Positions 3,363-56,835 of a stretch of 64,000 nucleotides of DNA are shown piece after piece; positions within the stretch are counted from its first letter, which is position 1, and every line of letters starts with the position of its first letter. Position numbers and translations under genes: made by a program. Under the pieces are notes generated by a model. It saw only the letters and a list, made by a program, of their open reading frames with translations. It made no database searches and had not been told where the DNA came from. Location of the stretch: positions 186,001 to 250,000 of the IMG/VR virus record IMGVR_UViG_3300036781_000418. The stretch is one strand, 5' to 3'.

Positions 3363-3770
3363 ATGTCTCTCGAAACTCTGTTGATCACCGCCGCCAAGGA
3401 CCAGTGGCGCTTCGCCTCCCCCAAGGGCGACCTCGCCCTGGAAGACCTGTTCGGCCTGTCGCTGCAGTCCAACACGGGCAAGGCCAACCTGAACGACATC
3501 GCCATCGGCCTGCACACGGAAGCCAGCGCTTCGTCCCAAGCCATCTCGTTCGTCGAGCCCGCCATCAAGAACAGCGACTTGCCGGCTCAGAAGCTCGAGC
3601 TGGTCAAGATGGTGATCGCCATCAAGGTCGGTGAACGCGACGCCGCCCTCGCTGCCAAGTCCAAGGCCGAGCAGCGCCAGAAGATCATGCAGCTGATCGA
3701 GGCCAAGAAGAACGAGGCCATGGCCGGCCAGTCGCTCGACGAGCTGACCGCCATGCTCGCCGCGCTGTAA
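3363..3770 (+). CDS. hypothetical coiled-coil phage protein
   Basis: AAGGAG RBS; 135 aa; helical C-terminus. Confidence 0.75.
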   Translation: MSLETLLITAAKDQWRFASPKGDLALEDLFGLSLQSNTGKANLNDIAIGLHTEASASSQAISFVEPAIKNSDLPAQKLELVKMVIAIKVGERDAALAAKSKAEQRQKIMQLIEAKKNEAMAGQSLDELTAMLAAL

Positions 3771-3771
3771 T

Positions 3772-3796
3772 ACGGCGACACGAGGCGACGCCGGTT
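3772..3796 (+). repeat. dispersed intergenic repeat ACGGCGACACGAGGCGACGCCGGTT (copy 1)
   Basis: Same core at 11026-11052(-), 16591-16615, 48495-48511 (partial), 48562-48584(-) and 59838-59857. Confidence 0.85.
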
Positions 3797-3991
3797 GCAA
3801 CGACCGGCTGGTTGCTTAAGGCACCACACCAAAGGGCGACGGCCACCACCGTCGCCCTTTCTGGCACCTGGAGCTGATCCCAAACATGGTCCCAATCTTT
3901 GGGACGCCCCTCGGCCGGCCGCGTTAAATAATTCAGTTAAGCCAACGCGAATAGACGCCGCGGATAACAACCGACAACGAGGAGGTCTCGA

Positions 3992-12574: not shown

Positions 12575-12861
12575 ACACGCTCTCAACGTTGATCTTTGGC
12601 GACGCTCGACTTGAACTTGACGTCATTGAGTCGCTTGACAGTCGAGTTTTCTCAAGAATGTGCGACCACAGCGGCCGCACCGTGGTCACGTTATCCTGCA
12701 AAGGGCTGGGTGCCGGTCATTACTTTGTGGACGGTGACGTGCTGTCCACCAGCGTCACGCTACACAAGCTCCACAACGACAACTTGGTGTTTCCGTCAGG
12801 TAAGATTCTGACCTCGTACAGCCTCGAAGGCACGGTTAAAGAGGTCAAACTGCGTAAATAG
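12571..12861 (+). CDS. hypothetical protein
   Basis: ATGA-coupled ORF. Confidence 0.5.
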   Translation: MNTLSTLIFGDARLELDVIESLDSRVFSRMCDHSGRTVVTLSCKGLGAGHYFVDGDVLSTSVTLHKLHNDNLVFPSGKILTSYSLEGTVKEVKLRK

Positions 12862-12911
12862 ATCCTGACTAACTTGGTGTACGCGTAGCGTCGCCGAGTT
12901 AGAATGTACCT

Positions 12912-13205
12912 ACCATGTCGAAAGACACGGTGATTGTCGTAATTCGGCTTGAGTTGATGAGGGTAACACGGGGGTTCAACTCCCCCCAGCTCCACCAAAA
13001 GGGTTTACTGGAATCTTTCTGATGGGGCTGAACGGGTAATCGACTACGCTACTGAAATGATAGACGCGACATGCAAGGCGATCTGCACCGATGATGTTTG
13101 TCGGAAAGAAGCAAAATCTTTAAATGCTAACAACAGCGTTTACGCTCTCGCCGCTTAAAAACCGTGCGCAGCTGGGGCCGATCGCCTTATAATCCAAAGA
13201 TCACT
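12912..13205 (+). ncRNA. ssrA: circularly permuted (two-piece) tmRNA, tag ANNSVYALAA*
   Basis: T-arm plus CAGCTCCACCA (ends 12997) lies upstream of the GGGGCTG 5' end (13024); G3-U70 pair; resume codon GCT at 13126 after TAAAT; TAA at 13156-13158; outer ends approximate. Confidence 0.92.
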
Positions 13206-13229
13206 CAAGGGGCTTCGGCCCCTTGTTTT
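13206..13229 (+). terminator. intrinsic terminator of tmRNA
   Basis: CAAGGGGC-TTCG-GCCCCTTG-TTTT. Confidence 0.85.
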
Positions 13230-13303
13230 ATGCCCAGACCCAAACAATCTGTTGGCGTAAAACCGTAAATAGTCTATGATGCCTCCATTGGTCGAGGCAC
13301 CCC

Positions 13304-13732
13304 ATGTTTATCAAAGTCGCGCTAGCAGCTCTTACCTTCAGCTCCCTTGCGGTCGCGAGTCTCGTGACGCAACCTGAAGACAACTACCTTTCCGTCGCCA
13401 AGTCGCCGGACCTGGAGTTCACGATTGATAAACGAACGATGGTGGTCGACGTCGAGACCACCTCCTTCGAGTTCGACCTCCACACCAAGTTCGCTCATCC
13501 GATCGAGTACAAGGGTAAGGGTGCGACGGAGGTCGTTGAGCGGACGCTCGTAATGTGTCACGAGCAGGCCATGGTCACGTTGAAGCAGCGAGTCCTGGAC
13601 GAAGACGGCGGTCTGATCGACCAGCGTGACACCTCCAAAATTTACCCGTACGCCAAGCCCGGGTTTCACCGTCAACTCCTGCAGTTCTTCTGCGCCCCTG
13701 CGGAAAAGCGTAAGCCGGACACCACCGTCTGA
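13304..13732 (+). CDS. secreted/periplasmic hypothetical protein
   Basis: N-terminal signal peptide; TAAATA at 13266; GAGG RBS. Confidence 0.65.
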   Translation: MFIKVALAALTFSSLAVASLVTQPEDNYLSVAKSPDLEFTIDKRTMVVDVETTSFEFDLHTKFAHPIEYKGKGATEVVERTLVMCHEQAMVTLKQRVLDEDGGLIDQRDTSKIYPYAKPGFHRQLLQFFCAPAEKRKPDTTV

Positions 13733-13792
13733 ACCTGAACTTTACACTTACCGTTGTCACCGTTACATGACGATGTGTTAAGATGCCGATAC

Positions 13793-13869
13793 GACTCCAT
13801 AGCTCAGTTGGTTAGAGCAGCGGCCTTCAAAGCCGCCGGTCCTCGGTTCGAGCCCGAGTGGAGCCACCA
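13793..13869 (+). tRNA. tRNA with UCA anticodon (opal-reading), copy 1
   Basis: GACTCCA/TGGAGCC-ACCA acceptor; anticodon arm GCGGC-CTTCAAA-GCCGC; canonical D and T arms; short variable loop. Confidence 0.88.
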
Positions 13870-13928
13870 AATGTCGTCGTCCGTGGATGCGACGGATCAG
13901 GAGCTGTTGGCCTGAACTTTAGTCCATT

Positions 13929-14005
13929 GCGCCCATAGCTCAGCGGTCCAGAGCAACTTGCTTCAAACTTGTTGGTCCTCGGTTCGAATCCGAGTGGGCG
14001 CACCA
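13929..14005 (+). tRNA. tRNA with UCA anticodon (opal-reading), copy 2
   Basis: GCGCCCA/TGGGCGC-ACCA; anticodon arm ACTTG-CTTCAAA-CTTGT with two U-U mismatches. Confidence 0.78.
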
Positions 14006-14025
14006 TCAACCTAACGAGGCTTGCC

Positions 14026-14481
14026 ATGCTACCCGCCGTCTGCGTGCTTATCCAGCACCACCAAGACAAGGACTTCTACATCGCCGTCTCGCGTCGCGAC
14101 GACCCCTCCCACTGGGGGCTGCCTGGCGGCAAGGACGACGATGAACACGAGTCGAACATTGAAGCCGCCCAGCGTGAGTGCAACGAGGAGATCGGCATCC
14201 TCGCCGCCCTAACGTCCTTCGAGCCCATGTACGTGGGACTTTGTCCGGGTGACGTGAACTTCTGGGTGACCACCTACGCGTTCATGGACCCTGAGCCGAT
14301 CCACTTCGACGAGCTCGTGGCCGAGAAAGGCCTGGTCGTCGAGTGGAAGTCCGAGCAAGACCTCTGTGATCCGAAGTTGACGCCCTTCGCGGCCTACAAC
14401 GTCGAGGTCTTCAAGTCGCTCCGCAACCGTTGGCCAAGTGGCGTGATTCCAGTTCCTGGTGTCTCCTACTTCAAGGGCTGA
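14026..14481 (+). CDS. Nudix hydrolase
   Basis: WGLPGGK..ESNIEAAQRECNEEIG Nudix box; GAGG RBS before ATG 14026. Confidence 0.85.
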   Translation: MLPAVCVLIQHHQDKDFYIAVSRRDDPSHWGLPGGKDDDEHESNIEAAQRECNEEIGILAALTSFEPMYVGLCPGDVNFWVTTYAFMDPEPIHFDELVAEKGLVVEWKSEQDLCDPKLTPFAAYNVEVFKSLRNRWPSGVIPVPGVSYFKG

Positions 14482-14659
14482 CCATGCGCTGGGTCTACCT
14501 TATCCTGGTGGCGGCGGTGATCATCGCGATCGTCTCAATCACGGGACTCTGCTACTCCTTCGACGACCACAACTACCGCCTGGCCGGCGCGTCGTGCATT
14601 GGGTTGTTCGCGTCGTGGATGGCGATCATCGTCTTCTTTGTCAAGCTAAAGGACTAACC

Positions 14660-15028
14660 ATGCAACGCCTCAAGCTCTTTTTCAAGAAGTGGGGTCTTCG
14701 CGGCCAGCTGCAGACGATCGACGAGCAGGTTGAACGGCTCAAGGATAACTTGATCGAGCTTGAGCGGACGCTCACCTTGCTCCAGGCCGCCGAGACTGGA
14801 ATTGAGCCAGGCCCAGACGCCCCCGCCGCGCTCATGCGCGTGCAGTACCACATTGTTCAGGTGACCGACGCCATGAAGCGCAGCACGAGTCACCTCACTG
14901 AGTTCAAGCGGTTGCAGGCCATGCTTGAAGGGCTGCTGGCCGCCATGGACCTTGATCGCTTAGTCAACCAGAGCAACAGGTTGTCGGGGCCGACGATTGA
15001 TCGTATAATGGCCTCGTCAGATCGCTAA
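14660..15028 (+). CDS. hypothetical coiled-coil protein
   Basis: AAGGA RBS before ATG 14660. Confidence 0.6.
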   Translation: MQRLKLFFKKWGLRGQLQTIDEQVERLKDNLIELERTLTLLQAAETGIEPGPDAPAALMRVQYHIVQVTDAMKRSTSHLTEFKRLQAMLEGLLAAMDLDRLVNQSNRLSGPTIDRIMASSDR

Positions 15029-15057
15029 ATAGTTCCATCAACCCACTGGAGAATACC

Positions 15058-15411
15058 ATGGAATCGTGAGTCACTCAAAAGCACTACCTCTACACCATCT
15101 CCCGCCGCGACCTCCCACTCGCGCAACAGGCTGTCCAAGCTGCTCACGCGGCGATTGAACACGCCTACCAGTACGGCCGATCTCCCGATCACCACCCGTC
15201 GTACATTCACCTCACCGTTCGAAACCAGCACGAGCTGATCAAGCTCAAGGCGCGCCTGCACCTCAACGAGGTCGACACCGCCGAGTTCCACGAGCCCTAC
15301 CTTGATTGGGGACTCACGGCCATCTCTTGCCTCGTCACCGAACAACAACGTCACCTCACTAAAGGGCTCCAACTCTGGCGCCTTCCCACTCAGGAGAATC
15401 ACCATGAATGA
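15058..15411 (+). CDS. Pth2-like peptidyl-tRNA hydrolase with in-frame TGA at codon 4 (putative readthrough); absent from the ORF track
   Basis: GGAGA RBS; MES*VTQKHYLYTISRRDLPLAQQAVQAAHAAIEH...EFHEPYLDWGLTAIS..KGLQLW; RxDL..Q..HA and TA motifs of the PTH2 fold; stop overlaps the next start. Confidence 0.8.
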
Positions 15412-15901
15412 AGAACAGAAAGCCAAGCTTGAGCATCATCTTCCGATCCGCATGATCGTGCGCCTGCAAGATGGCAAGGTCCAAGGTCTGACGGAGGAAT
15501 CGTTCAGCATGAACTGGAGCGACAGCCGTGTGAACGTGTTCTGGTCGGGCAAGGCGTACAGCATGCTTGGTGAACATCAGCTGAATGGCGTGAAGTCTGC
15601 TGAACATAACAGTAAGCCTAACGATCCAAATGAGTTGATCATTGATCCTCTGGCTGAAGATTCACCGATTGAAGTAGACTGGGATAAGTGGCTCTCCGCT
15701 ACCAACAAGTACGACAAGCGAAACGCACCCTTCGTAGTGAAGTCACATGGCACTTGGCAGCTTCGCGCTATTTCAGCCGAAAGACAGGTTGCCAAACACA
15801 AGACCTTGGCGGAACAGTACCAGGCATACTACCAAGAAGAGGCTGACAAAGTCAACAAGATCAACGCAATACTAAACCCGCCAGAGGAGACCGAAGAATG
15901 A
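15404..15901 (+). CDS. hypothetical protein
   Basis: AGGAG RBS before ATG 15404 (MNEEQK). Confidence 0.7.
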   Translation: MNEEQKAKLEHHLPIRMIVRLQDGKVQGLTEESFSMNWSDSRVNVFWSGKAYSMLGEHQLNGVKSAEHNSKPNDPNELIIDPLAEDSPIEVDWDKWLSATNKYDKRNAPFVVKSHGTWQLRAISAERQVAKHKTLAEQYQAYYQEEADKVNKINAILNPPEETEE

Positions 15902-16509
15902 AGATCACCTACACCCCAAACCCGCTGAACACCGTCATCGAACTTGACGCCCATGAGCAGGAGCTGTTCAAGCTGAAGTTGAGGATCGAAGAGTACGAGA
16001 ACATGATGTTCAACGCCCACTGGAACTTGACTCGCTCGTCTGAGTACCTGGCCACCTTGCCGCGGATGAAGACGCTTGAGGACGCTCGTGCTGAAGCCAT
16101 CAAGAGGATCGACCCCGAGTACTGGTGCAGCGACGACCGCACCAAGCTGGACGACCGAATCGACGAGCTCTTTGACCACTACCTTGGTGAACTTAGCATG
16201 AACCACAGCGGTGACTGCACCTGCTTTCCGTGCTCCTGCGGTAAGTGTCACGCTGAGGGCATGCTCGGCCTCGACACGACCAAGGGCCTCAGCAAGTACA
16301 TGGCCTCCAAGATCGAACGTGCCTTCTCCTACAAGGACGGCGACGTGTGGAAGCAGCGTACCCTTGAGGAAGTCCTTGAGCGCATGCGCGGCTACGACCC
16401 GAAGATCACCGACGAAGGTGTTGACCCGGGCTGGCTCAAACGCGGTGAGGCTGAGTTCAACTCGTTCCCAAGTGGAAGGAGGAGAACACGCGTGCCCTCG
16501 CCTGGCTAG
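15898..16509 (+). CDS. hypothetical protein with Cys cluster
   Basis: HSGDCTCFPCSCGKCH putative metal-binding motif. Confidence 0.7.
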   Translation: MKITYTPNPLNTVIELDAHEQELFKLKLRIEEYENMMFNAHWNLTRSSEYLATLPRMKTLEDARAEAIKRIDPEYWCSDDRTKLDDRIDELFDHYLGELSMNHSGDCTCFPCSCGKCHAEGMLGLDTTKGLSKYMASKIERAFSYKDGDVWKQRTLEEVLERMRGYDPKITDEGVDPGWLKRGEAEFNSFPSGRRRTRVPSPG

Positions 16510-16540
16510 AGGCGTACGCCAACGAGCACTTCCCTTCACA

Positions 16541-16615
16541 CAGCGCTCACTCGTAGAGGCATTAGCTGACAGATAGTGCGGGTTCACGTTACGGCGACAC
16601 GAGGCGACGCCGGTT
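16541..16615 (+). repeat. ~75 bp intergenic element, inverted copy at 48562-48635
   Basis: CTCGTAGAGGCATTAGCTGACAGATAGTGCGGGTTCA...CGGCGACACGAGGCGACGCCGGT is nearly identical to the reverse complement of 48562-48635. Confidence 0.9.
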
Positions 16616-16702
16616 CAACCCGAAGAAGCAGTACACATAGTTCACCACAACGACCGAACAAATGCAACCGGTCACCAACCGTTAAGCCGAAAGGACCTTA
16701 CT

Positions 16703-17290
16703 ATGACATGGTCGTGAGTCACTCTACCGACCAGCTTTGAAGAGCTGAAGACCGCCATGCAGGCCGGATACCAGACCACGGGTCTGAGCTTCTGGGACCA
16801 TGGGGTGATGGTGAAGGGTTACTTCGAGGACCTGATGGGCCAGCGCACGCTGACCTGGCGGCTGCCTCAGTGGTACCTCACCCATGAGGATAAGATCAAG
16901 GACGCGCTCCGTCCAAGGATGGACCAGCTGACCACGTATCAGCTCTGGCATGACCTTGGCAAGCCGTACTGTCGCACCGTCGACGAGCAAGGTAAAGTAC
17001 ATTACCCTGACCACGCCGACGTCTCAAGTCACATCTGGCGCAAGCTTGGTGGAGATCCATTGATCGCCGACTTGATTGAACGGGACATGCTGTGTCACCA
17101 GCTTCGTCCAGCGGAGGCCCATGAGTTCGCCTCCAACCCCAACGCACTCGCACTGCTGATCACCGCCCTCTGCGAGCTGCACGCCAACGCCTCAATGTTT
17201 GGTGGCTTGGAATCCGAGTCCTTCAAGATCAAGTGGAAGCGACTCGACAAGTGCGGTAACATCATCCTCAACAGTATCTTCAAGGAGTAA
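16703..17290 (+). CDS. HD-domain phosphohydrolase with in-frame TGA at codon 5 (putative readthrough)
   Basis: AAGGA RBS; MTWS*VTLPTSFEELKTAMQAG.. is in frame with the 16757 ORF; DHG...LWHDLGKP..HYPDHA..DMLCH HD motifs. Confidence 0.75.
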
Positions 17291-17295
17291 TCCAA

Positions 17296-17550
17296 ATGAA
17301 CTTCAATTCCCGTGAAACCTACCTCGTCGCCGTAGCTCAGTGGAAGGCCGAATACGCCGCCCACAGCCTGGCTATCCGCCAGCTCAAGCATGACCGCAGC
17401 AACCTGCAACGCGAGGGGAAGGACGTCTACCGTACGTTGGTCGCCATCACCGTCGCGAAGAACCAAGCGACCGAGATGATCAACGAGCGCCTTGCCAGTA
17501 AGGAGGCGGCTCAAGCTCAGTACGAAGAAGCGCGAGTGAAGGCCGCTTAA
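17296..17550 (+). CDS. hypothetical protein
   Basis: AAGGAG RBS; 84 aa. Confidence 0.7.
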   Translation: MNFNSRETYLVAVAQWKAEYAAHSLAIRQLKHDRSNLQREGKDVYRTLVAITVAKNQATEMINERLASKEAAQAQYEEARVKAA

Positions 17551-29460: not shown

Positions 29461-29534
29461 CAGAGTGTGGTGCCAAGTGGACGGCGACCTGCTTTGGAGA
29501 CAGGAACATGTCGGTTCGAGGCCGACCGCTCTGA
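29461..29534 (+). tRNA. tRNA-Pro(UGG), atypical, no encoded CCA
   Basis: CAGAGTG/CGCTCTG-A; TTTGGAG loop; weak D arm. Confidence 0.55.
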
Positions 29535-29732
29535 CAAAGCACATCTAGCGAGAACCCAAGTGCAAGGTTAGCCAAGCACAACGGTGCGATAGAATGCATT
29601 CATGCAAGTTGATGTTGAAGTTTGACATCGACAAAACAACTGAGGCCTTGCTTCAGTGACCTACCTCGGTAGGTACGCTCATTAAAAATTTGACGTGACA
29701 TCTAGTCCAAGGGCACCAACCCTTGGACATCT

Positions 29733-29806
29733 GCGCCCATAGCTCAATGGTAGAGTATCGCTTTGACATGGCGATTACGAAGGTTCGATTCCTTCTGGGC
29801 GCACCA
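29733..29806 (+). tRNA. tRNA-Val(GAC)
   Basis: TCGCT-TTGACAT-GGCGA; CCA encoded. Confidence 0.9.
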
Positions 29807-29809
29807 TTG

Positions 29810-29957
29810 TTCATAAACCCAAGAGTTACCGCTTGCAATCGGTTATCTACTTTAACTTGGTGTAAAAACCCGGAGTGCGGTTCGAGTCCGCACAACGCCC
29901 ATACTGGCTTCGGGGGCAATCTCCGAGAGCTACTTTTGTTGCTCTTGGGTTTATGAA
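29810..29957 (+). ncRNA. Y-RNA-like element A
   Basis: 16 bp outer stem TTCATAAACCCAAGAG/CTCTTGGGTTTATGAA; TACCG-N9-GGTTATC; internal T-arm GTGCGG-TTCGAGT-CCGCAC. Confidence 0.65.
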
Positions 29958-29966
29958 TTTTTCTGT

Positions 29967-30052
29967 GTGGACATGACTGAGAGGCTGAAGGTGACGGGCT
30001 GTAACCCCGTTCTGTAAAAAGCGCGTAGGTTCGAATCCTACTGGCCACACCA
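29967..30052 (+). tRNA. tRNA-Tyr(GUA)
   Basis: ACGGG-CTGTAAC-CCCGT; long variable arm; CCA. Confidence 0.9.
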
Positions 30053-30061
30053 AGTTTAGAT

Positions 30062-30135
30062 GCGGGATTCGTATAGTGGTATTACCTCAGCCTTCCAAGC
30101 TGATGATGAGGGTTCGATTCCCTTATCCCGCTCCA
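30062..30135 (+). tRNA. tRNA-Gly(UCC)
   Basis: TCAGC-CTTCCAA-GCTGA; U73-CCA. Confidence 0.93.
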
Positions 30136-30150
30136 CATTAAGAGGCTTGA

Positions 30151-30618
30151 ATGGCTAGAGGAAGAATTGAAGTCTCACGTGAGCAACTCCTCCAAGCAAT
30201 TGAATCGACAGATTCTGCCGTTCAAGCTTCTAAGCAGTTAGGATTGATGTACACCACGTTTATTCGCAGGTGTAAAGAGCATCAACTATATGCTCCAAAT
30301 CAAGGTGGTAAAGGAACTCAAAAACCTCGACCACAGATGAAAATCGCTCTTGAGGATATCTTCAACGGTAAACATTTGATGGATTCAAAAGCCATTAAAC
30401 GGAAACTGTTTGAAGCAGGTCTTAAGAAAGAAGAATGCGAGTGTTGTGGAATAGGTCCAGTGTGGAATGGCAAGAAGCTTACGCTTCAGCTTGACCACAT
30501 TGATGGAGATCGAACTCACAATGCTTTTGAGAATCTGAGAATTCTCTGCCCTAACTGTCACACTCAGACAGCCACATTTAGTAAGGGTAAAAATAGGACA
30601 CATGCGTCTGTGGCGTAA
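30151..30618 (+). CDS. HNH endonuclease (free-standing, homing-type)
   Basis: CECCG..LQLDHIDGDRTHNAFENLRILCPNCHTQT; AT-rich; stop lies inside the downstream tRNA-Leu. Confidence 0.9.
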   Translation: MARGRIEVSREQLLQAIESTDSAVQASKQLGLMYTTFIRRCKEHQLYAPNQGGKGTQKPRPQMKIALEDIFNGKHLMDSKAIKRKLFEAGLKKEECECCGIGPVWNGKKLTLQLDHIDGDRTHNAFENLRILCPNCHTQTATFSKGKNRTHASVA

Positions 30619-30689
30619 TTGGTAGCCGCGCTAGGTTGAGGGCCTAGTCCTATAATGGGGTGCAGGTTCGAGTCCTGTCAGACGCACCA
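30604..30689 (+). tRNA. tRNA-Leu(GAG)
   Basis: CTAGG-TTGAGGG-CCTAG; long variable arm; ACCA. Confidence 0.9.
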
Positions 30690-30696
30690 TGTTTTT

Positions 30697-30771
30697 GGGG
30701 GAGTACCTCAGTGTTAGAGGGCCCGCTTTTTAAGCGGAAAGTCGAAGGTTCAACTCCTTCCTCCCCCACCA
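30697..30771 (+). tRNA. tRNA-Lys(UUU)
   Basis: CCCGC-TTTTTAA-GCGGA; ACCA. Confidence 0.85.
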
Positions 30772-30775
30772 GTTT

Positions 30776-30891
30776 GAGAACCGTCGTTGATTGGTTATCG
30801 GAAAAGTCAGGGGTGCTTAAACCCCAGGATGAGCATGGTTCAAGCCCGTGCACCCTCGCAAGAGGTTTTACCGATCTGCATTTTTGTTCTC
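30776..30891 (+). ncRNA. Y-RNA-like element B
   Basis: GAGAAC/GTTCTC outer stem; AACCG-N9-GGTTATC; internal T-arm-like GCATGG-TTCAAGC-CCGTGC. Confidence 0.6.
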
Positions 30892-30901
30892 TCCGTTTTC
30901 C

Positions 30902-30996
30902 GACGAACCGTCGTCGAAGGGTTATCTAGTTCACGACTAAAGGGCGCGTATGTGTCCGGCTGCAGAAGCCATCACCCTTCACATCATTTGTTTGTC
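30902..30996 (+). ncRNA. Y-RNA-like element C
   Basis: GACGAAC/GTTTGTC and GAAGGGT/ACCCTTC stems enclosing three small hairpins; AACCG-N9-GGTTATC. Confidence 0.65.
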
Positions 30997-31000
30997 ACTT

Positions 31001-31075
31001 GGGCTTCTAGTATAGGGGGAATTACTACTGTCTTGCACGCAGTGAATCGGGGTTCGAGTCCCCGGAGGTCCACCA
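31001..31075 (+). tRNA. tRNA-Ala(UGC)
   Basis: ACTGT-CTTGCAC-GCAGT; G3-U70; ACCA. Confidence 0.9.
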
Positions 31076-31084
31076 AGTTTTAAT

Positions 31085-31161
31085 CGGAGTGTAGCGCAGT
31101 CTGGTAGCGCATCTGCTTTGGGAGCAGAGGGTCCCAGGTTCGAATCCTGGTACTCCGACCA
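31085..31161 (+). tRNA. tRNA-Pro(UGG)
   Basis: CGGAGTG; TCTGC-TTTGGGA-GCAGA; ACCA. Confidence 0.95.
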
Positions 31162-31221
31162 CGTTTTCGCACGGCACGGATGACCGTTATCATCCACACT
31201 ACTACGACTACAAGGAACTAA

Positions 31222-31509
31222 ATGGTACACGTAAAGATCATGTCCGGTGAGGACACGCACGATTCTTACCCAGGTAAGAACTACACGCTGATCACAGTCA
31301 ATGACCGAGATCGGATTCAGTTCGGCGAATGGGGTTCGCTCTTCGGTAACCCAGCCAACACAGCTGACGATCGCGGTGGAAACACCGAGGTGATGATCGT
31401 GATTCGCGAGAAGAGTTCAGAGCAGGAGACGTACCCGCTGTTGGGGAACGTCTACATCATGAACGATCAAGGTAAGACGATTGCGACTCGCCAGAAGAGC
31501 ATCAATTAA
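31222..31509 (+). CDS. hypothetical protein
   Basis: AAGGA RBS; 95 aa between tRNAs. Confidence 0.65.
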   Translation: MVHVKIMSGEDTHDSYPGKNYTLITVNDRDRIQFGEWGSLFGNPANTADDRGGNTEVMIVIREKSSEQETYPLLGNVYIMNDQGKTIATRQKSIN

Positions 31510-31516
31510 GAACAAC

Positions 31517-31624
31517 GCGGACGTAGCTCAGTTGGATTAGAGCTCGGCACACAAAACAAAGGCGGCCGGCTTGCCGATCAGTAGTGTGACGCGGTCAGAG
31601 GTTCGAGCCCTCTCGTACGCACCA
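31517..31624 (+). ncRNA. tRNA-like RNA with an expanded anticodon loop
   Basis: Normal acceptor, D and T arms with ACCA; CACAC/GTGTG stem closes a ~31 nt loop with no 7-nt anticodon loop. Confidence 0.7.
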
Positions 31625-31806
31625 AACGCGGACTCTCCCTGCTCACAGCGCTCGGAACGCCCATACAACCCATGGAAGAGCTCCTAGCTAGTACCTAGAG
31701 GCGGACTTTCGGCATCACTTAAAAACTGGTGCGGTTGGTGGTTAGCTTGTATGGTGCTCCCTGAGTAAAGAGGACCCGACCGGACAAGTCGCAAAACTGT
31801 TCCGAT

Positions 31807-31882
31807 GCAGGGGTAGCTCAGTTGGTAGAGTACTTGTTTGCCAAGCAAGACGTCGCGGGTTCGAACCCCGTTCCCTGCTCCA
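31807..31882 (+). tRNA. tRNA-Gly(GCC)
   Basis: CTTGT-TTGCCAA-GCAAG; TCCA. Confidence 0.93.
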
Positions 31883-31888
31883 AATTTT

Positions 31889-31978
31889 GGACACTTGGCC
31901 GAGAGGCTTAAGGCACCGGTCTTGAAAACCGACGGGCCCTTACGGGTCCCGTGAGTTCGAATCTCACAGTGTCCGCCA
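31889..31978 (+). tRNA. tRNA-Ser(UGA)
   Basis: CCGGT-CTTGAAA-ACCGA; long variable arm; GCCA. Confidence 0.92.
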
Positions 31979-31983
31979 GAACA

Positions 31984-32045
31984 TAGCAACCGCACGTGCA
32001 GGGTTATCATCCATTCGCTCTCCCTGTACAACCTCTTTGTTGCTA
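31984..32045 (+). ncRNA. minimal Y-RNA-like element D
   Basis: TAGCAAC/GTTGCTA and GTGCAGGG/CCCTGTAC stems; pyrimidine-rich loop; AACCG-N9-GGTTATC. Confidence 0.65.
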
Positions 32046-32056
32046 GTATTTCAGTT

Positions 32057-32180
32057 AGGGATGTCGTCCAGTGGTAGGACAGCCGCCTCAACGTCGTGAA
32101 TGACATCTTTAGTTGCGCAAGTAACCGCCGCTTCATGGTTATCCAAGCAGCTTACGTGGGTTCGATCCCCACCATCCCTA
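32057..32180 (+). ncRNA. tRNA (Gly-like) with the Y-type stem inserted in the anticodon loop
   Basis: AGGGATG/CATCCCT; D and T arms intact; ~53 nt insert AAC..CTTTAGTTGC-GCAA-GTAACCG-N9-GGTTAT. Confidence 0.7.
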
Positions 32181-32224
32181 ACCCCTTGACTTCAAGGGAA
32201 AGTATCCATTGGGTTCTTTCCTTT

Positions 32225-32354
32225 GGGGTCGTAGTGTAGTGGACAGCACGTTAACATCGATTGCTCCCTTTGTTGGACTTTGAATCCAACCGCTCGTGAT
32301 TGGTTATCTTTCTACAAAAAGACAGGATGGGTTCGAATCCCATCGACTCCACCA
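32225..32354 (+). ncRNA. tRNA-like RNA (G3-U70, ACCA) with the Y-type stem inserted 5' of the anticodon arm
   Basis: GGGGTCG/CGACTCC-ACCA; insert TAAC..CTTTGTTGGA-CTTTGAA-TCCAACCG-N9-GGTTA. Confidence 0.7.
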
Positions 32355-32367
32355 AAATTCTTTCCAT

Positions 32368-32496
32368 GCAGTCTTGGCGTAACGGTAGCGCGCGAACAGT
32401 CGTTCGCATCTTTAGTTGTCGCAAGGCAACCGTTCGTGAATGGTTATCTAAAGTACAAAGACGAGGTCCGTGGTTCAATTCCCGGGGACTGCACCA
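32368..32496 (+). ncRNA. tRNA-like RNA (ACCA) with the Y-type stem inserted in the anticodon stem
   Basis: GCAGTCT/GGACTGC-ACCA; insert AAC..CTTTAGTTGTC-GCAA-GGCAACCG-N9-GGTTA. Confidence 0.7.
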
Positions 32497-32564
32497 ACTA
32501 TTGGAGACGACAATGACAAACGAGAAAGGGCGATTGTGTTAGGTTAACTACACAAGGAGCCCAA

Positions 32565-32942
32565 ATGAGCCGAACCTTTCGGTGCAAGAACTACGAAGAC
32601 ACGCAGAACACGAGCTGGGACCGTCAAGGTCGCAAGATCGGTGGTTTCTACTGCGAGTACAGCTACGCGAACGAAGTCTACGACAGCAACCTTCACTGGG
32701 GCTGGCGGTACGTGCACATCTTTCGCCCTCCAACTCAGGAGGAGCTGATCAAGGCGTACTGGCGGAACCACGGCGAAAGCCGACACCGCTGCGCTCGCTC
32801 TCCCAGTCGGTACCACCGCGGCACGAGGATGGCGGAGAATCGTCGAATCAACAACCAGGAGCTGCATAAGTTCCTGAAGAACCCAGATCACGAGCCGATG
32901 CTCGAGGCCAACCCTCGAAACTGCTGGTGGGACTGGAGCTGA
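32565..32942 (+). CDS. hypothetical basic protein
   Basis: AAGGAG RBS; 125 aa. Confidence 0.7.
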   Translation: MSRTFRCKNYEDTQNTSWDRQGRKIGGFYCEYSYANEVYDSNLHWGWRYVHIFRPPTQEELIKAYWRNHGESRHRCARSPSRYHRGTRMAENRRINNQELHKFLKNPDHEPMLEANPRNCWWDWS

Positions 32943-33048
32943 TTTTCCGTTGTGAGCCTTGATCGGCCAAAGTCGCTGACTTATACGGAACCTGTGCAGC
33001 CTCATCAGCTGCACCGTGGTGACCATGGACAGTCACCGATCATTCAAC

Positions 33049-33135
33049 GCGGGTGTGGCGAAATTGGTGGCCGCGCTAGGTTTAGGTCCTAGTGGATTTA
33101 CATCCTTGCAGGTTCGAATCCTGTCACCCGTACCA
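33049..33135 (+). tRNA. tRNA-Leu(UAG)
   Basis: CTAGG-TTTAGGT-CCTAG; long variable arm; ACCA. Confidence 0.92.
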
Positions 33136-33299
33136 GTTTGGGGAGCATGGTTAGCGCCGTGTTCAGGCTAGCTTGGCCAAGCGGTTTAGTAGCGGACGGC
33201 CGTTCGCGAGCGACTTAGAGATGATGGTAGTGCTGTTCGACTCAGCGCCATCGAAAGCCACCCAAAACCCATAAATACTCCATACGTTTTGGAGTAGCC

Positions 33300-33629
33300 A
33301 TGAAGGTTGCACAGTTGTTCGAAGAGCTGAAAGCCTACACAGGTGGTCGGCTTTCAAAGACTCTCGAGAATGCAATGTTGGAGTTCTGCGATGCGTTTGA
33401 CATCGACAGCTTCTCGGTCTCAACTGAGAAGTTTCATCAGCCGCATCCAACTAAAGGTTGGAGCGATACGGTAAACGTGAAGAACTTCTTCATCAACATG
33501 GGGACTGAAAAGAACGCGACGCTGTTGAAACGGTACTTGAAGGACAAGGGCTTTGGAGTCGAAGATCGATACCGCCCTGAACATGTCGTCAATACTTGGA
33601 ACGTTCCAAAGAAGTTCAAGTCAAAGTAA
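33300..33629 (+). CDS. hypothetical protein with MKVAQLFEE N-terminus
   Basis: TAAATA at 33272; GGAG RBS. Confidence 0.7.
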   Translation: MKVAQLFEELKAYTGGRLSKTLENAMLEFCDAFDIDSFSVSTEKFHQPHPTKGWSDTVNVKNFFINMGTEKNATLLKRYLKDKGFGVEDRYRPEHVVNTWNVPKKFKSK

Positions 33630-33632
33630 CAC

Positions 33633-33720
33633 GCGTCGTGACCCTACATCGGTCTTCTAAGCCGATGACGAAAAAGAGTAGGATGGACGTCCACGGGTTC
33701 GATTCCTGCACGCCGCTCCA
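33633..33720 (+). ncRNA. D-arm-less tRNA-Arg(UCU)-like RNA
   Basis: GCGTCGT/ACGCCGC-TCCA; ATCGGT-CTTCTAA-GCCGAT nested in a CCTAC/GTAGG stem; T-loop TTCGATT. Confidence 0.55.
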
Positions 33721-33738
33721 TAACACAGAGGACCGATC

Positions 33739-34101
33739 ATGATTTTGCTTGAGTACCCCGACAACAAGAGCGCCCGCCAACACCTTACCTTGGGTAAGGA
33801 CTACGCGGTCGTTCGAGAGCTTGGCAACGGTCTCGTGATCGAGGCCGACAACTCAACTCCTGAGTCGCCCAACTTTCACACGCTGTTGGCTTCACGCTTC
33901 AAGGAAGTCGGTGTTGTGGTAAACCGTGACTGCACGAAAGCGAAGCCGATGCCGTTGGAGCTTGGACCGAGAGCGGTCGAGCTCAACATCATCTGGGACC
34001 ATGATGACATTGAAGACCTAGCTCCCGACCTTGACTCACGTTACGCCCACTTCAAGTGTGGTTCATGTGGGCACGATTGGTGGGCGGATTTAGGCGATTA
34101 A
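33739..34101 (+). CDS. hypothetical protein with C-terminal CxxC
   Basis: GAGGA RBS; KCGSCGHDW. Confidence 0.65.
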   Translation: MILLEYPDNKSARQHLTLGKDYAVVRELGNGLVIEADNSTPESPNFHTLLASRFKEVGVVVNRDCTKAKPMPLELGPRAVELNIIWDHDDIEDLAPDLDSRYAHFKCGSCGHDWWADLGD

Positions 34102-34104
34102 CTT

Positions 34105-34192
34105 GGAGATGTGGCAGAGTGGCCTATCGCACAACCTTGGAAAGGTTGAGGACTTTATCGTCCCATGGGTTCGAATCCCATCATCTCCTCCA
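34105..34192 (+). tRNA. tRNA-Ser(GGA)
   Basis: CAACC-TTGGAAA-GGTTG; long variable arm; CCA. Confidence 0.9.
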
Positions 34193-34198
34193 GACAGA

Positions 34199-34276
34199 AG
34201 CAGGGTAGCTCAGCCAGGTAGAGCGCTGGTCTCATAAGCCAGAGGTCGTGGGTTCAAATCCCTCCCGTTGCAACCA
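34199..34276 (+). tRNA. tRNA-Met/Ile2(CAU)
   Basis: CTGGT-CTCATAA-GCCAG; imperfect acceptor stem; ACCA. Confidence 0.75.
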
Positions 34277-34357
34277 ACACGTGGACCCTTGTTCACGGTA
34301 CAGCGACCGTAGCGTCGCAGTAGAATTGACTCATCAACAACGCATTGGACCGATGCT

Positions 34358-34669
34358 ATGCAACACAAGATGAACCAACTGATGCGTGTCAGCAAGACAC
34401 TTGGTTTCACTGAGTTCGCGTTTCCACTCGAACTCACGTACGGTCCAGCCTACGACGGCTACTGGATTGATCGAGTTGGACGTCTCTTTTCCACCAAGCG
34501 TGGTGAAGTTACGCCGCTGATCGCCAAGTGCACGGCCTTCGTCAAGGGCAACAGCTACGGCCTCATCATCCGTGGTAAGAACAAGTCGGTCTCTGGAACC
34601 GAACTGCTCCATGAACTGCGCAGCTCGCCCGAATGGCCGGTGCTGCTCGAACAATGGGGCAACATGTAA
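34358..34669 (+). CDS. hypothetical protein
   Basis: ORF between tRNAs; TAGAAT upstream. Confidence 0.55.
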   Translation: MQHKMNQLMRVSKTLGFTEFAFPLELTYGPAYDGYWIDRVGRLFSTKRGEVTPLIAKCTAFVKGNSYGLIIRGKNKSVSGTELLHELRSSPEWPVLLEQWGNM

Positions 34670-34675
34670 GATCAT

Positions 34676-34761
34676 GCGCATGTGGTGTAATTGGTAGCCA
34701 CACTTCTCTCAAAAGGAAGCGTCCGTAGGGCGTGTCGGTTCGAGTCCGACCATGCGCACCA
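34676..34761 (+). tRNA. tRNA-Leu(CAA)
   Basis: CTTCT-CTCAAAA-GGAAG; ACCA. Confidence 0.92.
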
Positions 34762-34893
34762 GGTGAGACCCCCGAAGTGACTAGGACGCGAGGCGGTCAT
34801 CGAGTAGAGGCGGCCACGGAATCGTGGCGGTAAGTAGTGAACACAACCTCCTCTACCGACCAGTGAGGTGACTGGATGAGAAAGCAGGGTTAA

Positions 34894-34993
34894 ACGCACT
34901 GATGAGCTGGTGAGAGTCCAGCGAAACGGGAAGGTGAACAGCCGATCGAGCGCTAGGTCGCGGCTCTCGACGCAGTATCCTTTCCGTATGCGT
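34894..34993 (+). ncRNA. type I hammerhead ribozyme
   Basis: Stem I ACGCA/TGCGT; core CTGATGA; stem II GCTGG/CCAGC; GAAA; stem III CGGGAAGG/CCTTTCCG; GTA cleavage triplet ending at 34988. Confidence 0.85.
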
Positions 34994-35007
34994 AAATAGA
35001 AACATAT

Positions 35008-35093
35008 GCTGGAGTAGCCAAGTGGTTGACGGCAACTGCCTTGTAAGCAGTCGGAGTTATCCCGCGCAGGTTCGAATCCTGTCTCCAGCTCCA
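35008..35093 (+). tRNA. tRNA-Thr(UGU) with an unusually long variable arm
   Basis: ACTGC-CTTGTAA-GCAGT; extra arm CGGAGTTATCCCGC; TCCA. Confidence 0.8.
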
Positions 35094-35336
35094 AGAAGTT
35101 CCAGGTGACTACGTGTAGGGGGTCTGGCCCAGTGCACACAGAAAATGCGTAGGATATTGGCCGTGAGAACCATGGTTTATGAGGCATGAGAAAAAGATTT
35201 GTCGGGACTGTGCCTCCGGAAACGACATGACCTGCACGAGAATAAGAGCAATGGTAAGCTTTGCAGGGTGCCACAAATATTTGTCAACGCGGAAGCAGTT
35301 GACCGGGGCTCTGTGTTTCATCCCCAACCTATCAAT

Positions 35337-35415
35337 GTCGAAGTGGGAGAGTGGATTACTTCCGACAGGCTGCAACCCTGTAGACGCATCGGTTCGATTC
35401 CGGCCTTCGACTCCA
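35337..35415 (+). tRNA. tRNA-Cys(GCA)
   Basis: ACAGG-CTGCAAC-CCTGT; U73-CCA. Confidence 0.85.
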
Positions 35416-35528
35416 AACGGGACCCTACGTAAGGGTAAAACGTCTGACCTGACGGGGAAACGCTTGAAGGGGCGCCTGACGGTGGGAGAAACAGACGACG
35501 AAACTGTAGGTCCTTCGGTTTCAACAAT

Positions 35529-35614
35529 GCGACTGTGGCGTAATTGGTAGCCGCGCAACGCTCAGAACGTTGTGGTCCTAGACCGTGGAGGTTCGAGTCC
35601 TCTCAGTCGCACCA
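35529..35614 (+). tRNA. tRNA-Leu(CAG)
   Basis: CAACG-CTCAGAA-CGTTG; ACCA. Confidence 0.92.
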
Positions 35615-35623
35615 TTGATCAAT

Positions 35624-35711
35624 AGCGGGGTAGAGCGTAGTTTGGTAGCGTGTTGGGCTCATAACCCAGCGTCGTAAGACCCCGGAGGTTCGAGTCCTCC
35701 TCCCGCAACCA
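35624..35711 (+). tRNA. initiator-like tRNA-fMet(CAU) with an extra arm
   Basis: 1:72 mismatch; GGG/CCC anticodon stem; CTCATAA loop; variable hairpin GTC-GTAA-GAC. Confidence 0.75.
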
Positions 35712-35718
35712 CAACAAT

Positions 35719-35844: not shown

Positions 35845-35849
35845 GAATT

Positions 35850-36014: not shown

Positions 36015-36038
36015 TTCATAAACTAGAGGAACTTTCCC

Positions 36039-55731: not shown

Positions 55732-56835
55732 ATGGAACGATACCTGGTCGGCGGTGCAGTCCGCGACGCGCTGATGAACGTGACACCAAAAGACCGTGAC
55801 TGGGTCCTTGTCGGCGCTACGCAGCAGGACATTGACGACATGGTCAAGGAAGGGTACCAGTGGGTTGGTGCCGACTTCCCCGTGCTGATCCACCCAAAAA
55901 CGAAAGAGGAGCACGCCCTCGCCCGAGTCGAACGTAAAGTCGGCCATGGCTACAACGGCTTTGAGGTGGACACGGAGGGCGTCACCCTCGAGCAGGACCT
56001 GGCACGTCGCGACCTGACCATCAACGCGATGGCTTGGGACACGAGCCCATCGATGGTGTACGAAGACGACATCATCGACCCGTACGGCGGTCGCAATGAC
56101 ATCAAGCACAAGATCATCCGTCACACGACGATGGCCTTCGTTGAAGATCCGCTCCGAGCCCTGCGTGTCGCGCGCTTCGCCGCCCGCCTCAGCTTCAGCG
56201 TCCACCCCACCACACACGACCTCATCAAGCACATGGGAACGTCCGGTGAACTGGAACACCTGACCGACGAACGTGTCTGGGCCGAGGTGAAGAAGGGCCT
56301 AAGCGGTCCGCACCCCACCGTCTTCATGTACCAGCTCTACAACCTCGGCATCATCAAGCACTGCGCAGTACTGCGTGAGGTCTTTCCATGGACCTACGAG
56401 TTCGTCGCCTACGGCGTGACGAAGTACCTGCGCATGGTCAAGGAGGAAGATCGCTTCGAACTGGGCCTGGCCTGCATGATGGCGTGTGGTGACGTTGAAA
56501 AGATCAAGGCCATTCCGTCCAGGACGAAGAAGGTCTACAACAACATCGGCTACCTGAACGAGATCCATGACTGGTCAAACGTGGCGGCCGACAAGTTGGT
56601 GACGGTCATCACGAAGATCGGCGGCCTACGTGAAGGCACGATGTTTGACGACATCGTCACCTGCCTCCAGCTGACGAAGCCAACGCAGATCGAGATCATC
56701 GACATCTTGACGGCCAGCCGCATGGTGATGCAGCAAGTTCGAGCCGACCAGTTCCCAGACCTTGAAGGCCAAGCGCTCGGGGCCGCGATGATCCAAGAAC
56801 GTGCGAAGCGCGTTGCTGAGCTGTTGTTACAATAA
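55732..56835 (+). CDS. cca: tRNA nucleotidyltransferase (CCA-adding enzyme)
   Basis: [53 protein letters not shown]. Confidence 0.93.

Follow-up and report, generated by a model that had tools for sequence, protein, structure and literature searches.

An intriguing question is raised by the genome of a soil jumbo phage (342,591 bp), in which two neighboring genes for enzymes predicted to act on tRNA 3' ends each carry an in-frame stop codon a few codons after their start: are these codons the ends of tiny upstream reading frames, or are they read through, and if so, by what? The analysis centered on a stretch of 64,000 nucleotides from IMG/VR record IMGVR_UViG_3300036781_000418 (positions 186,001 to 250,000), hereafter the window (Table 1). 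In the gene for an HD-like protein, ATG16703-ACA-TGG-TCG-TGA is followed by GTC ACT CTA and runs in frame (54 nt, 18 codons) into ATG16757, the start of a 177-aa ORF (16757..17290). While ATG16703 is preceded by a Shine–Dalgarno-like sequence, ATG16757 is preceded by gagctgaagaccgcc, which contains no good Shine–Dalgarno sequence. The second copy of this arrangement is located 1.6 kb upstream in a gene with a predicted Pth2 fold, where ATG15058-GAA-TCG-TGA is followed by GTC ACT CAA and GGAG is found at 15048-15051. Both leaders share the 13-mer TCGTGAGTCACTC, which occurs exactly twice in the genome, both times at these sites, whereas about 0.01 matches are expected by chance for a given 13-mer.

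Table 1. Features of the locus (positions are those of the window).
Coordinates	Strand	Feature	Details
12886..13249	+	Permuted (two-piece) beta-proteobacterial-type tmRNA	tag ANNSVYALAA; ARAGORN 12905-13249; RF01850, 113.9 bits, 12886-13228; neighbor in the same translation-rescue cluster
13793..13869	+	tRNA with anticodon UCA (opal suppressor 1)	77 nt, 7/5 acceptor/T stems, 5-nt variable loop, encoded CCA, A2-C71 mismatch; RF00005, 64.2 bits
13929..14005	+	tRNA with anticodon UCA (opal suppressor 2)	77 nt, canonical cloverleaf, encoded CCA; RF00005, 62.5 bits
15058..15411	+	Gene with predicted Pth2 fold	leader M-E-S, in-frame TGA 15067-15069, then 113 codons ending at TGA15409-15411
15064..15076	+	Copy 1 of TCGTGAGTCACTC	spans the proposed gate codon
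15898..16509	+	Cys-rich 203-aa gene of unknown function	between the Pth2-fold and HD genes in relatives (same position in 8 loci); no Pfam or PHROG hit; possible third member of the module
16585..16625	+	Intergenic repeat (TACGGCGACACGAGGCGACGCCGGTT)	78-118 nt upstream of ATG16703; possible phage promoter or regulatory site for the HD gene
16691..16695	+	Shine–Dalgarno-like AAGGA	7 nt before ATG16703
16703..17290	+	HD-like gene, full length as proposed	4-codon leader M-T-W-S, in-frame TGA, then 190 codons to TAA17288-17290
16712..16724	+	Copy 2 of TCGTGAGTCACTC	spans the proposed gate codon
16715..16717	+	In-frame TGA of the HD gene (codon 5), proposed gate codon	context TCG TGA GTC
55741..56121		PolyA_pol head-domain gene (PF01743)	separate from the HD-like gene

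The need for read-through is most apparent for the Pth2-fold gene. No ATG, GTG or TTG occurs anywhere after its internal TGA, and it is the only gene-like frame of this kind among 443 in the genome. Moreover, its Pfam and fold matches begin within a few residues of the TGA. In the case of the HD gene, the 13 codons between the TGA and Met16757 are conserved as protein in relatives. The segment xPxSFEELKxAM is retained in homologues, with Ser encoded by AGC here but by TCC in relatives, and residues 7–16 form helix 1 (pLDDT >= 95) of a structural model with a pLDDT of 97, which spans Met14, i.e. Met16757. Homologues in the locus L002 and in GAP32, ME3 and Arash start upstream with no stop at all, so that Met14 is internal. 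These findings support the sequence-only reading, which had proposed that the leader belongs to the gene and that Met16757 is not an independent start. The alternative that the leader is merely a regulatory upstream ORF, with the HD protein being produced independently from ATG16757 or by termination–reinitiation, is unlikely, even though ATG16757 is invariant in homologues and is picked by gene callers, and an ATG or GTG directly follows the stop in a few related loci (L053, L032, L046 and L058). All 106 leaders that were identified (see below) are in frame, which reinitiation would not require.

The most likely decoding agent, which the sequence-only reading did not name, is the pair of tRNA(UCA) genes located about 1.05 kb upstream. 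Both score far above the gathering score of 29 bits of the general tRNA model of Rfam. Their amino acid identity could not be inferred from their nearest tRNAs, as they show 65–77% identity to several isoacceptors and neither has a clear identity set; the anticodon arm resembles the phage's own tRNA-Trp(CCA) in relatives. ARAGORN labels both as tRNA-SeC because of their anticodon. Yet, selenocysteine insertion is highly unlikely: tRNA-Sec is characterized by 8/5 or 9/4 acceptor/T stems, a long variable arm and a length of about 90–100 nt, the phage tRNAs instead match the general tRNA model, and relatives use TAG at the same position. In addition, no hairpin follows either UGA. Fold z-scores are −0.4 to −1.1 for three of the four stretches analyzed, and the 54 nt after the Pth2 UGA are essentially unstructured (−1.5 kcal/mol, z = +0.65). 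No Rfam cis-element was detected in 12700-17400, and a 3' stimulatory RNA structure of the kind associated with programmed read-through was not found. A switch to genetic code 4 or 25 is just as improbable, as TGA is the commonest terminator of the genome and ends 230 of 443 or 199 of 364 gene-like frames (about 52–55%), depending on the frame set, while only the two leader TGAs and no convincing internal TGA were found. An excess of TAA at same-frame gene junctions (31 of 35) could reflect avoidance of read-through fusions, but is confounded by ATGA-type overlaps.

To assess whether this arrangement is conserved, homologues of both genes were collected. A nucleotide search of the region against 50,697 phage records yielded only tRNA-level matches and no close relative, and a peptide-pattern search with the HD protein alone in IMG/VR found nothing. 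Homologues were instead reached through the Pth2 neighbor and by local tblastn. In about 100 distinct phage loci, including the cultured phages RsoM2USA, GAP32, ME3, XacN1 and Arash, homologues of the two genes carry an in-frame stop at codons 2–5. In total, 106 distinct leader-stop contexts were found across both gene families, comprising 101 TAG, 4 TGA and one TAA, with leaders that are mostly 2–3 codons long. At the position of the HD TGA, TAG is found in 12 of 13 close homologues. TAA is nearly never used even in AT-rich phages. In view of this conservation, the possibility that the genes are broken or that the TGAs are assembly errors can be considered remote, although the sequence is known from only a single metagenome assembly: the same 13-mer is present in two genes, five of the genomes with this feature are cultured and finished, and the proteins downstream of the stop are under clear purifying selection.

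Strikingly, the type of stop codon tracks the anticodon of the neighboring tRNA. A TAG leader co-occurs with a tRNA(CUA) in the same locus in 34 viral and 20 metagenome loci, and a TGA leader with a tRNA(UCA) in 3 of 3 cases. One TAG leader is accompanied by a tRNA(UUA), which is compatible through wobble. No mismatched pair was seen (Fisher p = 1.3e-4 for stop type against anticodon), and relatives without a leader stop mostly lack suppressors (p = 8e-7 for leader presence against suppressor presence). One apparent exception, locus L029, was found to contain a tRNA(CUA) that ARAGORN had missed. These statistics are not corrected for phylogeny and many of the loci are related; furthermore, 29 leader-stop loci show no suppressor on the available DNA, and while most of these are short contigs, absence cannot be excluded. 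On the Pth2 tree, the TGA label, which is found in three lineages, needs 3 changes, at least 2 of which are forced by well-supported branches. The sister of the window phage on this tree, L035, is TAG-type with two tandem tRNA(CUA) genes. This pattern also bears on the possibility that the UGA is read at low level by a host near-cognate tRNA such as tRNA-Trp, as in phage Q-beta, without need for the phage tRNAs. UGA tends to be the leakiest stop codon in bacteria, and the context effects described below would equally apply to near-cognate decoding. However, this improbable scenario does not explain why most relatives use TAG with tRNA(CUA), why every TGA-type phage carries tRNA(UCA), and why relatives without leader stops mostly lack suppressors.

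The sequence context of the stop codons is likewise distinctive. All 4 TGA leaders read TCG TGA GT, whereas among the 199 real TGA terminators of this genome TCG precedes none and GT follows only 2. TAG leaders have a purine at +4 in 99 of 101 cases. Notably, the Pth2-fold gene itself ends in TGA, so that the suppressor must be context-limited or partly tolerated. The sequence-only reading had alternatively considered that GTGA-G-TCAC is a perfect 9-bp palindrome that could serve as a DNA operator. GTGAGTCAC is in fact an inverted repeat of 4-nt arms around a central G and not a self-complementary 9-mer. It occurs three times in the window against 1.1 expected, a weak enrichment that was reached in 11 of 100 shuffles, and the third copy (51912) lies inside a minus-strand gene and is chance. 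The motif sits at the same place in both genes, and the 13-nt identity goes beyond the 8 nt (TCGTGAGT) shared with the other TGA-type phages, which leaves the additional CACTC unexplained. Nevertheless, an operator is not supported and appears very unlikely, as the palindrome is absent from the TGA-type relatives L046 (GTGAGTGTCC) and L058 (GTGAGTGTTG) as well as from about 100 TAG-type leaders, and the site lies inside the coding leader, downstream of the ribosome-binding site.

Both gene products are predicted to act on tRNA 3' ends. The HD protein resembles the C-terminal domain of class II tRNA nucleotidyltransferases, in agreement with the sequence-only reading. Its best sequence and fold matches are CC-/A-adding enzymes, such as the Aquifex aeolicus CC-adding enzyme (PDB 3WFO-3WFS, UniProt O67911), with which the motif HDxGKP...GK.HF..H aligns (profile E = 0.002) and the fold matches with a TM of about 0.6 and a probability of 1.0 over residues 7–189. 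In contrast to these enzymes, it is a stand-alone protein of 190 aa without a nucleotidyltransferase head, aligning only to residues about 207–449 of those enzymes. H28, H78-D79, H95, H99, D123 and H127 are invariant in 34 sequences, and the all-helical model also gave fold hits to the HD proteins PhnZ, GlnD and PgpH. Pfam HD (PF01966) is not reached, with no Pfam family at E <= 0.1 for the 177-aa ORF, although one homologue (P0100) carries a precomputed PF01966 hit; the PHROG match is phrog_14850 of unknown function. For the second protein, a model with a pLDDT of 93 shows a Pth2 alpha/beta fold. The top 15 PDB hits are all Pth2-family or related structures (1wn2, 1q7s Bit1, 2zv3, 3erj, 1xty), with TM values of 0.64–0.76 for most (0.74 for the best-supported match, E = 5e-6). 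The sequence match to Pfam PTH2 is weak (E = 0.045, 14.4 bits against a cut-off of 23), while one distant homologue (P0234) has PF01981. Interestingly, HD and Pth2 are fused in both orders in some phages (homologues P0105 and P0115, and XacN1 ORF364). A complex prediction for the two proteins scored 0.45 against a best control of 0.00, which is rated as weak support.

Taken together, the two TGAs are most likely programmed gate codons, although charging of the phage tRNAs and decoding by them are inferred without RNA or proteome data, the only sequencing run containing this sequence being a soil-metagenome DNA run. In this model, ribosomes initiate at ATG16703 or ATG15058 and meet UGA after 3–4 codons, where host release factor 2 competes with the opal-suppressor tRNAs. 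If the charged suppressor wins, an amino acid is inserted and the full-length enzyme is made, whereas only a tri- or tetrapeptide is released if RF2 wins, with the local context favoring the suppressor. The output of both genes would therefore be set by the activity of the phage suppressor tRNA relative to RF2. The inserted residue cannot be read from database proteins: a Gln at the leader position results from gene callers that silently translate the TAG using code 15, and a Tyr codon (TAC) at the stop position in L002 is a single case that says little. It is likewise inferred, with about evenly balanced confidence, that the gate functions as a feedback or dosage sensor, or as a timer tied to phage tRNA expression. 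More speculatively, the suppressor tRNA of standard-code jumbo phages may not be a decoding aid but a dedicated trans-acting regulator of a tiny regulon of tRNA-3'-end enzymes, which in turn act on the suppressor or on the by-products of suppression. This natural orthogonal feedback circuit would be old enough to span phages of several proteobacterial host groups (cultured hosts include Ralstonia, Xanthomonas, Acinetobacter and enterobacteria) and would have been rewired at least twice from UAG/CUA to UGA/UCA. This remains a tentative idea that the evidence does not rule out.

No report of such gating was found in the literature searched, yet several known systems share individual aspects. In phages with recoded stop codons (code 15/4 crAss-like, Lak and other gut phages; bioRxiv 10.1101/2021.08.26.457843; PMC13037316), a phage-encoded tRNA(CUA) or tRNA(UCA) decodes in-frame stops while the host uses the standard code, which has been proposed to regulate when the genes are translated. 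There, dozens to hundreds of mostly late genes carry many in-frame stops and the recoded stop is depleted as a terminator, while here only two genes with a single stop each were found to be affected in a genome of 57% GC. The present arrangement is a possible intermediate on the road to full reassignment. In prfB, an early in-frame UGA serves as a sensor at which a termination factor competes with an alternative decoding event, but this event is a +1 frameshift and the sensed factor is the gene's own product, whereas in-frame suppression by a dedicated tRNA is proposed here. Lambda bar minigenes are likewise 2–4-codon ORFs linked to peptidyl-tRNA hydrolase biology; they are free-standing and act through peptidyl-tRNA drop-off in pth-defective hosts, whereas the mini-ORF described here directly abuts a Pth2-fold gene in frame and covaries with a suppressor tRNA. 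Synthetic amber-suppressor gates (PMC7969014; PMC13276491) follow the same logic, in that a premature stop makes expression of the target gene dependent on a separately expressed suppressor tRNA, but are engineered. Suppressor tRNAs have been noted in the cultured jumbo phages XacN1 (PMC5852040), RsoM2USA (PMC8504454) and phiKp24 (PMC8386662), for which no targets were reported. XacN1 and RsoM2USA carry homologues of the gated genes, and candidate targets are found at gene starts, i.e. 'MK-TAG-TIKAM' in XacN1 ORF364 as well as 'ML-TAG' and 'MKS-TAG' in RsoM2USA.

These leaders also expose a systematic annotation error. The genes are truncated, split or missing in GenBank records, as exemplified by GAP32_397-399, with none annotated in 11 of the 20 phage records that matched, and PHROGs splits the families into fragments. 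Finally, the repeat upstream of the HD gene is present in 4 copies in the window, and 11 copies of its core ACGAGGCGACG, which look intergenic, occur in the genome.

As stated in the sequence-only reading, an AAGGA motif is followed seven bases later by ATG16703 ACA TGG TCG TGA GTC ACT CTA, and this stretch continues in a single frame into the 177-codon ORF of the HD-like gene, whose own ATG16757 has no good Shine-Dalgarno sequence. Strikingly, a second gene starts the same way: GGAG, six bases, and then ATG15058 GAA TCG TGA GTC ACT CAA. The 13-mer TCGTGAGTCACTC occurs only at these two places in the genome, while a third GTGAGTCAC at 51912 lies inside a minus-strand gene and is a chance occurrence. 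The window covers bases 186001-250000 of a single 342,591-bp contig with 57% GC that IMG/VR classes as complete, with terminal repeats, and that is represented in only one sequencing run, a soil-metagenome DNA run. The contig carries 40 tRNA genes and a tmRNA and is thus a jumbo phage. The tmRNA is of the permuted (two-piece) beta-proteobacterial type with the tag ANNSVYALAA, which hints at a beta-proteobacterial host. Two related loci, L004 and L005, also carry a tmRNA 1.3-1.6 kb upstream of the gene for the predicted Pth2-fold protein.

Coordinates of the features discussed (positions in the window unless stated otherwise)
Feature	Position	Remark
Shine-Dalgarno-like AAGGA of the HD-like gene	16691-16695	
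In-frame TGA of the HD-like gene	16715-16717	
ORF of the HD-like gene as called	16757..17290	177 codons
GGAG upstream of the predicted Pth2-fold gene	15048-15051	
In-frame TGA of the predicted Pth2-fold gene	15067-15069	
Frame after the TGA of the predicted Pth2-fold gene	15070-15411	113 codons
tRNA(UCA) 1	13793-13869	77 nt
tRNA(UCA) 2	13929-14005	77 nt
NUDIX-domain ORF	14080-14481	directly downstream of the two tRNA(UCA) genes
Permuted tmRNA	12886-13249	
Cys-rich protein of unknown family	15898-16509	203 aa
Conserved motif, candidate promoter or regulatory site	16585-16625, 3766-3806, 48481-48521, 59833-59873	7 more copies in the genome
PolyA_pol (class II nucleotidyltransferase head) domain	55741-56121	in a 370-aa frame
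RF-1/GGQ-domain ORF	genome 286707-287261 (locus L132:308-862)	184 aa; outside the window
Gene-like frame with a start-free 5' part	52614-53684	356 codons
tRNA array	29461-37367	

The second gene requires read-through. After its TGA, the frame runs for 113 codons without a single ATG, GTG or TTG, and in a six-frame coding-potential census of the genome it is the only one of 443 gene-like frames with no start codon. Its product has a weak Pfam PTH2 hit, and a pLDDT-93 model matches solved Pth2 peptidyl-tRNA hydrolases, mostly at TM 0.64-0.76, with a best E-value of 5e-6. The matches begin within a few residues of the TGA, so that this protein can only be made from ATG15058 through the stop.

A plausible decoder lies next door. 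ARAGORN finds two tRNAs with anticodon UCA about 1.05 kb upstream, with 7-bp acceptor stems, 5-bp T stems, a 5-nt variable loop and an encoded CCA, which match the general tRNA model at 64 and 62 bits. Judged by sequence and architecture, they are therefore ordinary opal-suppressor tRNAs, not tRNA-Sec. As, in addition, no hairpin follows either UGA, a selenocysteine reading is strongly disfavoured. Neither does the genome use an altered code: TGA ends 52-55% of gene-like frames, and censuses for internal in-frame TGA and for further ATG-leader-TGA arrangements turned up nothing beyond these two genes that exceeds the TAA/TAG background. Interestingly, where two coding frames abut in the same frame, the intervening stop is TAA in 31 of 35 cases, although TGA is the commonest terminator overall. 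This could reflect avoidance of read-through fusions in a phage with an opal suppressor, but it is confounded by ATGA-type overlaps.

Fourteen IMG/VR loci encode the predicted Pth2-fold protein at 63-79% identity. In 13 of the 14, an ATG or GTG is followed after 1-3 codons by an in-frame stop, but this stop is TAG; the remaining locus, L007, has a divergent N-terminus. Ten of the 14 loci have tRNA(CUA) genes within 4 kb, and the HD homologues in the same loci show ATG ACG TAG GTT and variants in 12 of 13. In at least 8 related loci, the Cys-rich protein (CTCFPCSCGKCH), for which no family hit was obtained, is likewise conserved between the Pth2-fold and HD genes, and it may belong to the same module.

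Cultured phages show the same arrangement. Ralstonia phage RsoM2USA carries ML-TAG and MKS-TAG, Acinetobacter phage ME3 carries MT-TAG, and Salmonella phage Arash carries ML-TAG, with its tRNA(CUA) annotated as tRNA-Phe. Cronobacter phage GAP32 (290461-291027) carries MAQ-TAG plus an internal TAG in the HD gene, around which the GenBank record splits that gene into three CDS. In Xanthomonas phage XacN1, ORF364 is an HD-Pth2 fusion preceded by MK-TAG. The gate codons thus cause annotation artefacts: the Pth2-fold gene is unannotated in 11 of the 20 matching phage records, PHROGs holds fragment families (phrog_26054, phrog_34073), and database proteins that show Gln at the leader position are TAG codons translated under code 15 by the gene caller.

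A profile search gave 79 more viral loci and 80 metagenome loci, which allowed the leader stop to be compared with the anticodon of the neighboring suppressor.

Leader stops and suppressor tRNAs in viral and metagenome loci
Set	Leader and suppressor in the locus	Loci
66 unique viral sequences	TAG leader + tRNA(CUA)	34
	TAG leader, no suppressor within 5 kb	9
	TGA leader + tRNA(UCA): window, L046, L058	3
	No leader, tRNA(CUA) present	3
	No leader, no suppressor	17
58 further unique metagenome sequences	TAG leader + tRNA(CUA)	20
	TAG leader, no suppressor (mostly 1-3 kb contigs)	20
	TAG leader + tRNA(UUA), compatible through wobble	1
	TAA-leader candidate	1
	No leader, tRNA(CUA) present	4
	No leader, no suppressor	12

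No locus combines a stop with the wrong anticodon, although many loci are short contigs. One apparent absence, in locus L029, turned out to hold a tRNA(CUA) with a weak anticodon stem that ARAGORN had missed, and 15 of the 17 viral loci with neither a leader nor a suppressor form one distinct clade. The single candidate TAA-type leader (MKKYNNL-TAA-INDSKLRVVVREDL) stems from locus L199 on a 1.9-kb metagenome contig of 23% GC (Ga0114951_10076891), on which there is no tRNA against which to compare it. Fisher tests, which are not corrected for relatedness, give p = 1.3e-4 for stop type against anticodon and p = 8e-7 for leader presence against suppressor presence. On a maximum-likelihood tree of the Pth2-fold proteins, the TGA label needs three changes, at least two of them forced by well-supported branches: the window is sister to L035, which is TAG-type with two tandem tRNA(CUA) genes, L046 is sister to the TAG-type L026, and L058 sits in the ME3/GAP32 clade. 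The UCA tRNAs are 75-83% identical to CUA suppressors of other loci. In relatives they share the anticodon arm GCGGTCT-NNN-AAACCG, as does the phage's own tRNA-Trp(CCA).

All four TGA leaders, from three phages, read TCG TGA GT, while among 199 real TGA terminators of this genome TCG precedes none, GT follows two, and G at +4 is the rarest choice at 25 of 199. Across 101 distinct TAG leaders, position -1 is G in 61, +4 is a purine in 99 and +5 is T in 78. In E. coli, a 3' purine favours suppressor tRNAs over release factors, and it is inferred here that the same preference may apply. The palindrome that the sequence-only reading had offered as a possible DNA operator exists only in the window; an operator is unlikely because the palindrome is not conserved. 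The extra five identical bases (CACTC) shared by the two leaders may reflect gene conversion when the lineage switched from TAG to TGA.

The 13 codons between the TGA and Met16757 are conserved as protein, with PTSFEELKTAM here against PNSFEELKAAM, PTSFDELKAAM and KLEALRSKM in relatives, and Ser is coded by AGC here and by TCC in relatives. Homologues in locus L002, GAP32, ME3 and Arash, and in several database proteins, start upstream with no stop, and in those the invariant Met14 is an internal residue. In the AlphaFold model (pLDDT 97.1), residues 7-16 form the first helix.

For the HD-like protein itself, Pfam gives no hit and PHROGs gives phrog_14850, 'unknown function'. However, a profile of 34 homologues finds the Aquifex CC-adding enzyme (PDB 3WFO-3WFS), in which YxxxHDCGKP...GKxHFPDHA aligns with LFHDIGKP...GKVTFYEHDKV at E = 0.002. 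Foldseek ranks the same enzyme first in the PDB (TM 0.6, probability 1.0), and in Swiss-Prot models it ranks CC-/A-adding enzymes of Aquifex, Deinococcus and Thermus first, followed by the GlnD HD domain. This agrees with the resemblance to the HD domains of tRNA nucleotidyltransferases suggested by the sequence-only reading. Notably, the phage encodes a separate nucleotidyltransferase head domain, which is probably its CCA-adding enzyme. The HD and Pth2 domains occur fused in both orders (P0105, P0115 and XacN1 ORF364), and a complex prediction scored 0.45 against a best control of 0.00, which is rated as weak support.

The simplest account is that the phage suppressor tRNA decodes the early stop in competition with RF2 (RF1 in TAG-type relatives), so that both enzymes would be made only in proportion to suppressor activity. 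In the absence of translation, charging or expression data, this remains the most likely reading rather than a demonstrated one. Reinitiation is unlikely, since all leaders are in frame, one gene has no start codon after its stop, and the stop type follows the anticodon; pseudogenes are excluded. Conceivably, the gate serves as a feedback or dosage sensor for the suppressor-to-release-factor ratio, by analogy with prfB, or as a timer tied to phage tRNA expression; these two readings are considered the likeliest. Both products are predicted to act on tRNA 3' ends, and the genes lie beside a tmRNA. The genome also carries an ORF with an RF-1/GGQ domain (GAGGQHRNK) that lacks the N-terminal and codon-recognition parts of a full release factor and looks like a PrfH/ArfB-type ribosome-rescue factor. 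All of this fits a role in handling the by-products of suppression, or in limiting the suppressor itself.

Suppressor tRNAs in such phages have been noted before. The XacN1 paper states that reading through the genome's amber stops in silico did not reveal targets of its CUA suppressors (PMC5852040), and the RsoM2USA and phiKp24 papers only note the suppressor (PMC8504454; PMC8386662). Work on recoded phages concerns genome-wide reassignment (10.1101/2021.08.26.457843; PMC13037316). No description of leader-stop gating of these genes was found in full-text searches, although prior description outside the literature covered cannot be excluded.

A conserved motif, (T)ACGGCGACACGAGGCGACGCCGGTT, occurs 11 times in the genome at positions that look intergenic, and in several copies an RBS-like GAGGG/AGGG follows within about 60 nt. 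One copy lies 78-118 nt upstream of the HD gene's ATG, and the motif is a candidate phage promoter or regulatory site. In one further gene-like frame, the first 49 codons after a TGA contain no start codon yet score as coding, but this frame overlaps the 5' end of a minus-strand gene and may thus be spurious. Finally, several members of the large tRNA array are unusually long for their type (Thr 86 nt, Met 88 nt and Cys 79 nt by ARAGORN), which may reflect introns or mis-calls.
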